Sequence record: PQ287320.1
Direction: 5' to 3' (one strand)
DNA length: 64,000 bases
The translations under genes and the position numbers were made by a program. Below are positions 41,890-53,432 of the stretch, piece after piece. The notes under the pieces were generated by a model. That model saw only the letters and a list, made by a program, of their open reading frames with translations. It had not been told where the DNA came from and made no database searches. Position 1 is the stretch's first letter, and every line of letters begins with the position of its first letter.

Positions 41890-42020
41890 ACATCCTGGTG
41901 GTCGGCTAATAGCCTCGACAGGCCTAAGTCCTCCAGGTCAAGCCTGGAACCACCCGGCCTTGCGGGGTCCAAAAGGACCCATCACCATGCGCCTTGCACC
42001 CGAAGGCTCGGGGCGCGAAT

Positions 42021-42109
42021 TGGAGCTTCGGGAGGGACTCGAACCCTCATAGGTGTCACCACCAGCAGAGCTTTGCAGGCCCGCGCCTAACCTCTCGGAC
42101 CACCGAAGC
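42021..42109 (-). tRNA. tRNA-Cys(GCA) with a long variable arm
   Basis: GCUUCGG/CCGAAGC acceptor, U73, encoded CCA, loop CU-GCA-AA, T arm GAGGG-UUCGAGU-CCCUC, variable arm GGUG-GUGA-CACC. Confidence 0.85.
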
Positions 42110-42292
42110 ACAAAAGGACCTCGACGCCCGAAGGCCCGAGGTCCGATCCGTAACCAGGGGAGGGCCGTAGCTGTCCCTGACCCTGAACGACAGGTGGCGG
42201 GCTTGGTCGTCATCCCGTCAGGCTCGCGGCGCCGCTCGCCTGAACCGCCGATATGCCACGAGGGCAGTGATCCGCAGGTCCCCACAAATAGC

Positions 42293-42326
42293 AAAAAGGC
42301 CACGATCGCGAGGACCGTGGCCTTTT
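42293..42326 (-). terminator. Intrinsic terminator downstream of the GOLLD-like RNA
   Basis: aaaaggccacggtc-ctcgc-gatcgtggccttttt on the - strand. Confidence 0.8.
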
Positions 42327-42329
42327 CGT

Positions 42330-43205
42330 TTTCCGATGGGCTGAGACTACACCCATCAGCAATCCCGCTTCGAGGATTATTCCCCAGGTGCGACCCCAGG
42401 TATTCCCTCGACGTCCACCAGACCCCTTGCGGTAGTCCAGTCCGAGATCATCGCCGCCGTTCTTGCGCACCCCGAAGGGATTGCGGGTCTGGCGTTTGAC
42501 CCATCATGGCGAACTACTCGACAGTTCCTTCCCCGCTGGGCTTGCGACCCACTCACCGGCGCTAACCGGCTGACGAAGCTCTTCCTATCGACACCTCGCG
42601 GGCTTGCGACCCTTGAGATGACTCCGTTACCCGAAGGCCGGAGCATTTGGCGACTTACGTCCGCCACTGGACCAGTCTTTGCGTTTTTCATCGAAGCGGG
42701 GATTGAACCCGCGACCGACAGCTAGGATGGCTGTTGCACTACCACTGTGCTATTCGCAAACCCACCAAGACGTGCTGGTCCAGTTGTTTCCAGGGCTTTT
42801 GACCCCAGAAATGCAACACGCCTCATGTCTTTCGCCTTGCGGGCTACTCGACTGTCCTTCGGGACCTCTGTCTCATCCAACCCTTCGGCCAGACTGCCCA
42901 GCACCCCTTGGACTGAAGCAAAGCTCTTCACCGCGAAGTGTCGAACCCTGCAACCCAAACGGTTATCCGTACTCCTTGGATCGAGTTGCGTGGGTAGTCC
43001 GGTGGCGCCGGACTGGTGGTTAAAGCCTCAGAGTTACCCAGGCCCCACCTTGTCTCCCTCGATCTTCAGGTCTATCCCCTTTTGCAAGAGGCGGCCAGCT
43101 TCCCAGCCCGGACCCGTCGGCTTCCTCTGTCCTCTTGCGAGGTCGGGCGGCCTATGGGAGACCGTCCCTGTCACCCCGTCGCCGGGGCTTTCGTCGGAAG
43201 CGACG
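42330..43205 (-). ncRNA. GOLLD-like giant ornate RNA (~870 nt)
   Basis: - strand motifs match the GOLLD consensus as I recall it, in the expected order: GAGUAGCCCGCAAGGCGAAAG (42829-42849), GUGUUGCAUUUCUG (42806-42819), AGCACGUCUU, CCGGUUAGCGCCGG (42556-42569), CCGCAAUCCCUUCGGGGUG (42466-42486) and GUAGUCUCAGCCCA (42337-42350). Many GNRA and UUCG hairpins; own promoter and terminator; phage tRNA-cluster context. Confidence 0.8.
42688..42759 (-). pseudogene. Degenerate tRNA-like domain (UCC, Gly-like) embedded in the GOLLD-like RNA
   Basis: Intact D arm GCAC-AGUGGUA-GUGC, anticodon stem ACAGC/GCUGU and T arm GCGGG-UUCAAUC-CCCGC, but A33, a broken acceptor stem and no CCA. Confidence 0.7.
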
Positions 43206-51321: not shown

Positions 51322-53432
51322 TTAGTGGCCGAACGTCATGGTGAGGGGAATGGCCCGCAGGAGGCCCGCCAGAGCCTTGGTGCAGGCCTCGACCTGCTCC
51401 TTGCTGTTGGCGTTCGACAGGTTCTCGACGAACTTGCGAATGGGGTGATTGTAGCTCTTGAAGAGCAGGTTGTAGCCCTCCTCGAAGGCCACGCAGGCGG
51501 CCGACTTCGGCGGCGCCTGGAAGTTCCCGTCGACGTCGTAGAGCGAGCGGATATAGGTGCGCTCACGCTCGTTCCAGCCGTGGACCTTGGCCACCAGGAA
51601 GGGCTTCATCGCCACGAAATAGCTGGCGAGCCCGGACTTCATCCGGCCCAGGGCGTCGAAGTCGGCCTCGCACTGCTCGATCGCGCGCCCGAAGAAGGAC
51701 ATGCCGGTCGAGGACGACGACAGCTTGCCCGCCAGATTGACGATGTCGTCCAGCGAGACCTTGTGCTCGTCCGCCAGCTTGCCGGCGATCGCGTCCTTCA
51801 GCGAGGGAATCTTGGCGTCCTCGACGTGCTTGAGCGCGGTCGGCGAGGCGATGTAGACCTGCTTGATCCCGAACTTGCTGGCCACGACGAAGGTGTCTTC
51901 CGGGCGCCGGCGGTACTGGTCCGACGACACCCAGGCGGTCTCAGGCGCGAACGCAACCTCGGTCACGGCCTTCTGCTCGCCGGCGCGCTTGGCCAGGGCC
52001 AGCCCCCGGATCGGCGGGACGTAGACGGTCTTGGAACCCTTGGGCGGGGCGGCGCGCGGCACGTTGCCCCGCAGATCGTCGATCGGGAGTTCGATGAAGG
52101 TCGCCTTGGGGAGGGTGGCGTCCCAGAAGGCCTTGGGCTTGTCGAAGGCCAGGAGGAATTCGCCGCGCTTGAGCTTCTTGCTCTCCAGGTAGAGCCGGAA
52201 GAGCCGGGCCAGACGGCGGGTCTCGCTCTGGGAGAACTCCTTCTTGGACTGGTCGTCGCGGGAGGGATCGAGCAGTTCGCTGATGTCGCGGACGACGTAG
52301 AACGAGCGTTCGGTCTTGCTCCGCAGGTCGATGGTGTTCTCGATCCGGTAGCCCCAGCGCTCGCGGTAGTCGTCCATGCTGGCGCTGTAGACGCAGGCGA
52401 TGTCGGGCAGCGAGATGGTGGTTCCGCTCAGGCCCGTCAGCGGGTGGGTCACCGTCTTGAAAAGGAAGTGCGGCTTGATCTTGTTGTAGGTGTCGAAGAA
52501 CTCGACCACCGATTCGATGTCCTTGACCTTGTCCCAGATCACGTCCTCGACCTCGGCGACGATGGCGGCGATCTTGTCGTTGAGGAGTTGGACCGTCTCG
52601 GGCGGTACTGGATTTCTTCGCGCGACGGGACCGGCTCGACCGAGCCGATCGGCACGGTGATCAGCCACTTGCGGCCGGAATCGTTCTGGAGGGCAAGGCC
52701 GCTCTTGGAGGCCAGGGGGTAGATGACGCAGCCTTGGCGGATGTTCCAGGTCGCCGGCAGGGCCGAGCCCTCATAGGCGGCCCAGGTGCCGTCCTTGCCC
52801 TCGAACTGCGCCGTGCCGAGGCCCGCCAGTTCGATGTTGCTGTCGAACATCGGCTCAAAGCCCAGGGCGATGTTGCGCACGGCCTTCTCGAAGGCCTGAA
52901 AGTCCTTGGGCTCGACCGCCACGGTGACGCGCACGCCGCGCGGCTCGGCGCAGTCCTCGGTCCCCTGGAGCATGATCTTGGGGGTCCCATTGACCCCGAT
53001 GGCGGCGGTGTAGTGGCGCACCCGCTCGCCGTCATAGCACGAGAGCGAGAACTGGTCGGCATAGGCGAACGGGCTCTTGGACCCCAGGCCGAACGCCCCG
53101 ACCAGATCGTCGGTCTCGTCCTTGTCCGACTCGAACAGGGTCGAGTAGAGGTGCATGACCTTGGCGTGGTCCATCCCGACGCCGTAGTCGCGAACGTAGA
53201 ATTCCGGGCGCGTCATGTTCGGGACGTTGATGTAGAACGTCCCGTCGTAGCAGGCCGACAGTTGGCTGTCGTAGGCGTTGGTCGCAAGCTCGCGCACCAT
53301 CGAGCCGATCTTGTCCGAGTAGAGGCCGTCGATCAGCATCCGGAAGGCCTTGGCGTTGGCCTTGATCTTGAAATCCTGTTCCTCCTCGACGCCGATGGTT
53401 TCGAGGTGCTTGGCTTCGCTAGACAGACGCAT
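51322..53432 (-). CDS. rIIA: rIIA-like protein (GHKL ATPase N-domain); 1-nt break at ~52625
   Basis: KAFRMLIDGLYSDKI..VRELATNAYD, VRDYGVGM, GAFGLGSKSPFAY.DQF and GVRVTV. Confidence 0.9.

Follow-up and report, generated by a model that had tools for sequence, protein, structure and literature searches.

A tRNA-Derived Domain That Probably Remains Part of the GOLLD RNA in Caulobacter Phage BL57

Introduction

The GOLLD RNAs are among the largest non-coding RNAs of bacteria and phages, and their cage structure has recently been solved. In the window studied here, 64,000 nucleotides (nt) of the sequence record PQ287320.1 (Caulobacter phage BL57), a GOLLD RNA encoded on the minus strand carries within its linker a tRNA-like domain, and the question raised by this locus is whether that domain is a tRNA delivered by GOLLD or a fixed part of GOLLD itself whose anticodon loop is read by some other factor. 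An earlier note on this DNA had considered that the domain cannot be released as a functional tRNA and had proposed that it might act as a decoy for tRNA-targeting defense nucleases or tRNA-binding proteins.

The existence of tRNAs embedded in the GOLLD linker J13/15, which the earlier note had mentioned, is already established (bioRxiv 10.1101/2024.12.08.627333), and that preprint cites Weinberg et al. (2009) for them. The assembly of other GOLLD members into cages is known by cryo-electron microscopy (cryo-EM) (bioRxiv 10.1101/2024.12.08.627333; PMC12990946); in the solved cage the 5' and 3' domains fold separately, and the linker, which is not resolved in the maps, was assigned to the cage interior (bioRxiv 10.1101/2024.12.08.627333). 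The embedded tRNAs have been discussed in print as possible cargo or "stored" tRNAs; a tRNA-Phe is present in a Mycolicibacterium GOLLD and "inhibited storage" was proposed in a review (PMC12990946), and Northern blots detected no separate product of the "pseudo tRNA gene" inside the GOLLD of M. aubagnense (PMC6582537). As to the phage group of BL57, the Rfam analysis in the 2012 phiCbK genome paper detected only tRNAs as RNA elements (PMC3556154).

Results

The BL57 Insert Keeps the tRNA Core and Lacks the Acceptor End

The GOLLD covariance model (Rfam RF02032) matched the minus strand of the window at 42824..42338 with 169.7 bits, above the gathering score of 150, and the match covers the full model (positions 1-416) without truncation, that is, the whole conserved 3' domain. 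A tRNA match (Rfam RF00005; 42756..42692, minus strand) begins 64 nt past the start of the GOLLD model, with 42.9 bits, an E value of 8.7e-6 and a gathering score of 29, and it extends only over positions 4-67 of the tRNA model; ARAGORN called a tRNA-Gly(UCC) at 42760..42687 on the same strand. According to these two predictions, to the stem covariation and to the acceptor statistics, the tRNA-like domain comprises 71 nt (42689..42759) and has intact D, anticodon and T arms and a 4-base pair (bp) acceptor remnant. It lies in linker J13/15, past the first 3'-domain hairpin and ahead of the conserved AAAGCAAAAG motif, which is the site of the known embedded tRNAs.

The D arm (GCAC/AGUGGUA/GUGC), the anticodon stem (ACAGC/GCUGU) and the T arm (GCGGG/UUCAAUC/CCCGC) are fully paired, the variable loop is CGGUC, and the nucleotides of the tertiary core are kept (U8, A14, G18 G19, G15/C48 and the T loop UUCAAUC); hence both the cloverleaf and the tertiary core of a canonical tRNA are present. 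The seven-bp acceptor stem of such a tRNA is absent: the 5' strand UUGCGAA (42759-42753, followed by U8 A9) and the 3' strand UUCGAUG (42695-42689) form the pairs 4-69, 5-68, 6-67 and 7-66 (CGAA/UUCG) and a U1-G72 wobble, positions 2-71 (U-U) and 3-70 (G-A) being mismatched. Directly 3' of the acceptor strand, where a tRNA would have N-CCA, the RNA runs into AAAAACGCAAAGAC, and CCA is not encoded. The anticodon loop, read on the minus strand at 42723..42729, is C32 A33 U34 C35 C36 U37 A38 (C-A-UCC-U-A; positions 33-37 at 42728-42724) and lacks the U33 and the purine 37 of a canonical loop. The earlier description of three intact arms, an acceptor reduced to CGAA/UUCG, a missing CCA and the loop CA-UCC-UA was thus accurate, for the minus strand.

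Both borders of the domain are conserved GOLLD sequence. The spacer GGUGGGU (42760..42766) leads into it, with a family consensus UAGGUU whose positions G43 G44 T45 T46 are at least 90% conserved in alignment A2, and right behind the acceptor 3' strand stands the linker motif A-AAAACGCAAAGA (42676..42688), invariant in alignment A2 and in agreement with the Rfam consensus AAAGCAAAAGUCU.

The tRNA set of BL57, read from the GenBank record, provided an internal comparison. Twenty-one of the 22 Rfam tRNA matches in the genome span positions 1-71 of the model, and only the embedded domain is cut to 4-67; similarly, N-CCA is encoded after 26 of 27 ARAGORN calls, the exception being again the embedded domain. 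A canonical tRNA-Gly(UCC) is also encoded as a free gene in BL57, with the 7-bp acceptor GCGGGUA/UAUCCGC, the loop CUUCCAA and U-CCA, which makes the embedded "Gly" copy superfluous for decoding. Of the 10 contigs that have at least 20 free tRNAs, 7 likewise contain one whose anticodon equals that of the embedded copy.

The Truncated Acceptor Is a Feature of the Clade

A pattern scan of IMG/VR yielded 65 contigs which, together with the cultured phages, gave 43 distinct embedded domains. Stem covariation was analyzed over 47 homologous GOLLD inserts, and 532 free tRNAs from the same contigs were used as a control for the acceptor. The distance between the start of the GOLLD model and the tRNA match was 64-67 nt in BL57, in Mesorhizobium phage Cp1R7A-A1 (loop UU-CAG-GA) and in Sinorhizobium phage Phosso (loop CU-UCU-AA), with compensatory changes in all three stems. 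The D, anticodon and T stems were paired in 99.5, 95.7 and 98.7% of the cells over the 47 inserts, both-side changes were observed in 12 of the 14 pairs, and the observed covariation was reached by none of 500 shuffles. The fold thus exceeds what chance would give, and its structure is under selection.

Acceptor positions 4-7 were paired, with covariation, in 93, 91, 93 and 95% of the 43 embedded copies, and positions 1-3 in 44, 40 and 53%, the value expected by chance being 37.5%. All seven pairs were present in a single copy, and CCA in none of the 43. In the free-tRNA control, pairing was 95-98% at every acceptor position and seven pairs were found in 454 tRNAs. The first bases of the acceptor 5' strand are part of the conserved GOLLD spacer GGUU. 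The truncation is therefore a stable inherited feature of this GOLLD clade and not a decay specific to BL57.

The linker of Roseobacter phage DSS3P8 was different: its GOLLD RNA (contig L010, 1238-1671), which scores barely over the threshold (150.7 bits) and adjoins an alpha-type permuted transfer-messenger RNA (tmRNA), as does that of BL57, has two small hairpins and no tRNA in the linker.

The Anticodon Loop Is Swapped as a Block in the phiCbK Group and Biased in the Wider Family

The phiCbK-group alignment (A1; ~190 nt) comprised seven phages: BL57, phiCbK, Ccr10, Karma, Magneto, Swift and RBC57. All seven share one sequence for the tRNA-like domain, the flanking stretches and the linker-closing helix, apart from loop positions 33-37. 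These are the only variable block in the 190 nt and exist as A-UCC-U in BL57, G-UCC-U in phiCbK and Ccr10, and U-CUU-A in Karma, Magneto, Swift and RBC57. The earlier note had pointed to related phages as the place to look for anticodon variation, and such variation was indeed found there. The Karma-type loop, C-U-CUU-A-A, has U33 and a purine at 37, corresponds to the textbook loop of tRNA-Lys(CUU), and brings the Rfam tRNA score up to 56.1 bits.

Only 4 columns besides the loop block vary in the whole 487-nt GOLLD 3' domain of the group. At positions 42879 and 42635 Swift goes with phiCbK and Ccr10, and yet it has the Karma-type loop; the loop alleles are therefore out of step with the other polymorphisms, which indicates shuffling by recombination or more than one origin. 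A partner of the loop within GOLLD was not detected, since no column of the ~1.4-kb alignment has the partition of the loop alleles, the nearest one being 42337 (A/G), where BL57 groups with the Karma type. Further loop alleles on a phiCbK-type body were not found with the exact-body pattern, which retrieved no metagenome contigs and, from IMG/VR, only Karma itself. With a looser pattern for the alpha clade, one metagenome contig (a Phosso relative with the same UCU loop) and no genome contigs were retrieved.

In the wider family, NUU (Lys/Asn-type) anticodons, which include UUU, CUU, GUU and also AUU, were present in 26 of the 39 embedded copies with 7-nt loops versus 40 of 517 free tRNAs, a comparison whose P value is inflated because the copies are related. 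U33 together with a purine at 37 was found in 33 of the 43 embedded copies versus 494 of 517 (95.6%) free phage tRNAs, a contrast in which the Fisher P value overstates the independence of related copies; four of the 43 have an 8-nt loop, and C32, U33, A37 and A38 are retained in most. A family-wide hypervariability of the loop was considered and rejected, because outside the phiCbK group, at 80-90% body identity, the loop showed 0.037 differences per site and the body 0.164. There the loop thus evolves more slowly than the body and is constrained rather than free.

GOLLD cages use self-kissing loops, and homotypic kissing through self-complementary anticodon loops was also considered, the Karma loop containing CUUAAG, those of BL57 and phiCbK CUAG, and the NUU-AA loops UUAA. 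It was set aside because neither the UUCAGGA loop of the Mesorhizobium phage nor the CUUCUAA loop of the Sinorhizobium phage is a palindrome, and because UUAA cannot be separated from Lys/Asn identity.

Two further observations concern the anticodons. Embedded domains with stop-reading anticodons were noticed, namely UUA (ochre) in L019:5482-5628 (minus strand) and UCA (opal or Sec-like) in L050:5293-5435 (minus strand). BL57 encodes at record positions 51697-51783 (L140:1221-1310) a 90-nt tRNA whose variable arm is long and of the Leu/Ser type; its acceptor has 7 bp, CCA is present and the loop is that of Lys (CU-UUU-AA). It looks like a type-II body with a Lys anticodon, an uncommon combination that may be relevant to the Lys theme of the GOLLD inserts.

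A Covarying Helix Closes the Linker around the Domain

Three helices of the host RNA had been proposed around the tRNA fold, and they fared differently. The first one, formed by the 5' strand CUGGACCAG (42775..42783) and the 3' strand CUGGUCCAG (42667..42675), was paired in 93.1% over the 47 homologues, with both-side changes in 7 of 9 pairs, and this covarying 9-bp helix makes the linker a loop that encloses the tRNA-like domain. The second one, UUUGCG (42755..42760) with CGCAAA (42683-42678), has two bases in common with the acceptor remnant, so that the two compete and cannot both form in full. The minimum-energy fold of the 117-nt linker (z = -1.94) picks UUUGCG/CGCAAA over the covariation-supported CGAA/UUCG, and we do not regard thermodynamic folding of the linker as decisive. 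Outside the alphaproteobacterial-phage clade, a UUUGCG/CGCAAA helix of at least 5 bp in the same register was found only in contig L045. The 5-bp match of L013 is two bases out of register, and for the remaining 39 homologues of the 47 no match exceeded the shuffled expectation. The third one, GUCUU/AAGAC, was rejected because GUCUU belongs to the 3' strand CACGUCUU (42767..42774) of the conserved first GOLLD hairpin, which the Rfam alignment pairs with GAGGCGUG at the start of the match, and the homologues have AUCGC or a similar sequence there.

GOLLD Is Highly Expressed, with Molecules That Span Both Junctions

The expression of GOLLD was analyzed in the assembled contigs of two public RNA sequencing (RNA-seq) runs (X1 and X2) that contain a phiCbK-type phage with the G33 allele. 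Each run gave one contig of ~1.16-1.18 kb that is unbroken over the domain (42020-43191 and 42025-43177), with mean depths of 4759 and 3942, versus 173 and 163 for the neighboring tmRNA/tRNA-Met contig of the same phage. A depth ratio of ~25:1 between adjacent parts of one genome cannot be due to contaminating DNA, and GOLLD is therefore highly expressed. Because the contigs cross both junctions of the domain, molecules that span these junctions exist. The expression in infection, together with the phage location and the tRNA neighbors, agrees with the GOLLD assignment made by the covariance model. No phage reads were found in the raw-read runs X22 and X24.

Complete tRNAs Occupy the Same Site in Other GOLLD Clades

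A second scan, with a Lactobacillales-type motif, revealed at the same spot of the linker complete tRNAs with seven acceptor pairs and a CCA fused to the motif (IMG/VR contigs L082, L104 and L116), as well as copies with 5-6-bp acceptors (L087, L089, L100 and the L077 group). Some of the complete embedded tRNAs have odd loops, such as UGUAUCA (G33, C37) in the region L116:3545-3579 and CCUCUAA (C33) in the region L082:3937-3972. The insert of BL57 and those of L082, L104 and L116 have the same position in the linker and a tRNA 3' end that abuts the same conserved motif, but the latter three have a 7/7 acceptor, a discriminator base and an encoded CCA (...G-CCA-AAAGCAAAAGUC) and look releasable, whereas the BL57 clade has a 4-5-bp remnant and no CCA. 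The BL57 clade seems to stand at the extreme of a series that starts with a releasable tRNA and ends in a hard-wired tRNA-like domain.

The GOLLD Transcript and Its RNA Island

The 2.6-kb region around the element is 100% identical to Caulobacter phage BL57 (PQ287320), a phiCbK-like phage, and 17 other phiCbK-group phage records are 92-93% identical to it; the GOLLD homologues of six other phages of the group scored 165-171 bits with Rfam. The RNA island gathers within 2 kb a tRNA-Cys gene, GOLLD with its insert, a permuted tmRNA and two tRNA-Met genes, and all GOLLD and tRNA-like features are on the minus strand. The whole GOLLD transcript extends approximately over 42293..43191, according to the Rfam match, the RNA-seq contigs and the terminator, its 5' end being given by contig ends only. 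Its parts are a variable 5' domain, a linker that holds the tRNA-like domain, the conserved 3' domain (42338..42824) and a terminator hairpin (GGCCACG...CGUGGCC plus a U run; 42293..42322).

The terminator is followed by ~180 nt and then by the tRNA-Cys gene, and the RNA-seq contig is unbroken across it; this continuity down to 42020 suggests either read-through or a precursor in common with tRNA-Cys. The tRNA-Cys(GCA) (42021-42109, minus strand) has 89 nt, a long extra arm and a low Rfam score (35.1 bits), and a sub-threshold mascRNA-menRNA match (28.4 bits) belongs to this tRNA and not to the GOLLD insert. The abundant GOLLD contig stops near the CCA end of tRNA-Cys (42020 and 42025). The related Caulobacter phage RBC8 (L011; PV231354, 100537-104877) keeps the tRNA-Cys, the permuted tmRNA and both tRNA-Met genes and has no GOLLD, and it constitutes a natural GOLLD-minus comparator in the same host.

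Discussion

Taken together, these comparisons suggest that the BL57 element is probably a tRNA-derived structural domain that remains a permanent part of GOLLD rather than a conventional tRNA gene. The L-shaped core is kept and the parts for maturation and charging are lost, namely acceptor pairs 1-3, the CCA at the 3' end and, in BL57, also U33 and purine 37. According to this proposal, most copies would stay covalently attached to GOLLD and, by homology with the solved cages, the interior of each cage may hold some 10-14 tRNA elbows with their anticodon stem-loops. The anticodon loop might be the working surface, read by an anticodon-specific partner, because it is NUU in most family members, is conserved, and is swapped as a block among phiCbK-group phages that are otherwise identical. 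A host tRNA-cleaving defense nuclease, a tRNA-modifying enzyme and an aminoacyl-tRNA synthetase are candidate partners, and the domain could serve as a bait, a decoy or a cargo tether.

Among these roles, a specific decoy function is plausible, with the NUU bias and the loop swap as hints, although we would call it rather unlikely from what the sequences offer. In its broadest form, a hard-wired, non-releasable tRNA mimic present throughout the clade and bearing a Lys/Asn-type loop would be a bait that captures or neutralizes an anticodon-reading host factor, and the block swap would be an adaptive change of target or an uncleavable variant; we advance this only tentatively, with a low chance of being right. 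The target of such a bait may be a defense nuclease that cleaves tRNA-Lys/Asn or a class IIb synthetase.

Several observations weigh against a permanently attached domain with a displayed loop. The location of the linker in the cage interior limits access and complicates a simple display (bioRxiv 10.1101/2024.12.08.627333), and two cuts in the linker, one at each side of the domain, could leave the halves of GOLLD joined by the closing helix, so that excision would be structurally tolerable. Complete tRNAs with CCA are found at the same spot in L082, L104 and L116, and release may thus be the ancestral mode. Odd loops are no proof of non-function, since U37 is also present in the free tRNA-Asp(GUC) (loop CUGUCUC) and tRNA-His(GUG) (UUGUGUC) of BL57, and C33 in one free tRNA-Ile(GAU) (loop CCGAUAA); these tRNAs and a tRNA-Ile(AAU) belong to the cluster at ~49.9-54.2 kb of the record (L133, L140 and L128), and all of them have an encoded CCA; U37 alone is therefore weak evidence. 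In addition, the Karma-type loop is that of a perfectly canonical tRNA-Lys(CUU), of which the main tRNA cluster of BL57 showed no free copy. The RNA-seq contigs, which reveal neither RNA ends nor local depth, leave room for partial excision, and the same contig enters tRNA-Cys, which is presumably processed. As to the decoy function in particular, the wider family shows a conserved loop and no hypervariability. The earlier claim that the domain is not releasable as a functional tRNA therefore stands in part: the sole 4-67 match among 22, the sole CCA-less call among 27, the truncation shared by 43 homologues and the redundancy of Gly(UCC) are comparative, indirect evidence that it is not an ordinary tRNA gene, but its U37 argument is weak and excision is possible.

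The lack of any CCA in the 43 copies and the chance-level pairing of their top three acceptor positions, against 95-98% in free tRNAs, speak against the view that the domain is a genuine tRNA precursor, which would be excised by RNase P and 3' processing, receive CCA and be used in translation (as Lys-CUU in the Karma group), the BL57/phiCbK allele being a variant or recently inactivated. This would agree with the labels tRNA-Gly or tRNA-Lys given to the locus in GenBank, with the score and canonical loop of the Karma-type copy, with the CCA-bearing tRNAs of other clades, with the missing free tRNA-Lys(CUU) in the main cluster, and with codon usage, to which CUU in GC-rich phages versus UUU in AT-rich contigs would fit. 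It is hard to reconcile with the CCA encoded in all 26 other BL57 tRNA calls, the assignment of the first acceptor bases to the conserved spacer GGUU, the redundant free tRNA-Gly(UCC), an A33 or G33 with U37 that violates two nearly universal rules of anticodon loops, and the mycobacterial pseudo-tRNA that gave no separate product (PMC6582537), and we consider it unlikely. Still less probable, in our opinion a slim chance, is that the fold is a processing signal at which RNase P (plus RNase Z or E) is recruited and the linker nicked; the closing helix would keep the 5' domain joined to the 3' domain, and the excised piece would be a by-product. The elbow and T arm, the main determinants for RNase P, are fully conserved, CUGGACCAG/CUGGUCCAG would keep the halves together after cleavage, and in the solved cage each of these domains folds on its own (bioRxiv 10.1101/2024.12.08.627333); however, a pure cleavage signal needs no conserved Lys/Asn-type anticodon loop, many GOLLDs, such as that of phage DSS3P8, do without a linker tRNA, and the RNA-seq contigs are continuous through the domain. 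Moreover, a 4-bp acceptor without CCA is generally a poor substrate of bacterial RNase P.

The insert could also be an architectural module or an evolutionary relic with no partner in trans, that is, a captured tRNA that fills or organizes the linker and whose loop differences reflect drift or hitch-hiking. A passive spacer, nevertheless, would not account for the sequence-specific constraint indicated by a loop whose conservation exceeds that of the body and which mostly keeps C32, U33, A37 and A38 and is NUU in two-thirds of the copies, and five changes at five adjacent positions, with the rest of the domain unchanged, do not resemble drift by point mutation. The absence of loop hypervariability in the wider family, the lack of any GOLLD position that covaries with the loop swap, and a linker that is not resolved in the cryo-EM maps (bioRxiv 10.1101/2024.12.08.627333) would all fit such a relic, but GOLLDs without an insert exist and the cage as such does not need one; we judge this explanation to be improbable. 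What the sequences favor, then, is a tRNA-derived domain that stays in GOLLD and whose anticodon loop is probably under selection for its sequence.

In one large GOLLD clade, therefore, the embedded tRNA has lost its maturation and charging end and kept the elbow and a mostly Lys/Asn-type loop, often in redundancy with a free tRNA, and the question moves from which tRNA GOLLD delivers to who reads the anticodon loop. A bait role, if true, would be the first molecular function for GOLLD. The tRNA-Gly and tRNA-Lys labels of this locus in ~18 phage genomes in GenBank probably overstate the decoding repertoire of these phages. GOLLD RNAs with an embedded tRNA or pseudo-tRNA were already known, and what is new are the family-level regularities, which make GOLLD function testable in Caulobacter and phiCbK. 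The clade includes a tractable model in the phiCbK-type phages of Caulobacter crescentus, with natural allele pairs of Karma type and phiCbK type.

With respect to known systems, the BL57 insert resembles the embedded (pseudo-)tRNAs of other GOLLDs in the RNA family, in the phage and tRNA-island context and in the site, after the first hairpin and before the conserved AAAGCAAAAGUC-type motif, and the M. aubagnense copy was likewise named a pseudo-tRNA and had no separate transcript (PMC6582537). It differs from them in belonging to an alphaproteobacterial phage group and in the acceptor truncation throughout the clade, the mostly Lys/Asn-type loop of the family and the non-canonical allele of BL57 and phiCbK, three features that we did not find described in the GOLLD literature examined and regard as new.

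Phage tRNAs with altered anticodon loops were reportedly proposed by van den Berg et al. (eLife, 2023) to evade host tRNA-cleaving defenses, and the changes in the loop of a tRNA-shaped phage RNA, as well as the U37 of the free tRNA-Asp and tRNA-His of BL57, recall them. Those tRNAs, however, are said to be free and chargeable and to replace cleaved host tRNAs, whereas the BL57 domain is not chargeable in its present form and is attached to an RNA that forms cages. The tRNA-like domain of tmRNA, the 3' tRNA-like structures of plant viruses and mascRNA also reuse the tRNA fold within or at the end of a larger RNA, but they mimic the acceptor/T-arm half, with a CCA end or excision by RNase P, whereas the BL57 domain keeps the elbow and the anticodon half and has lost the acceptor end.

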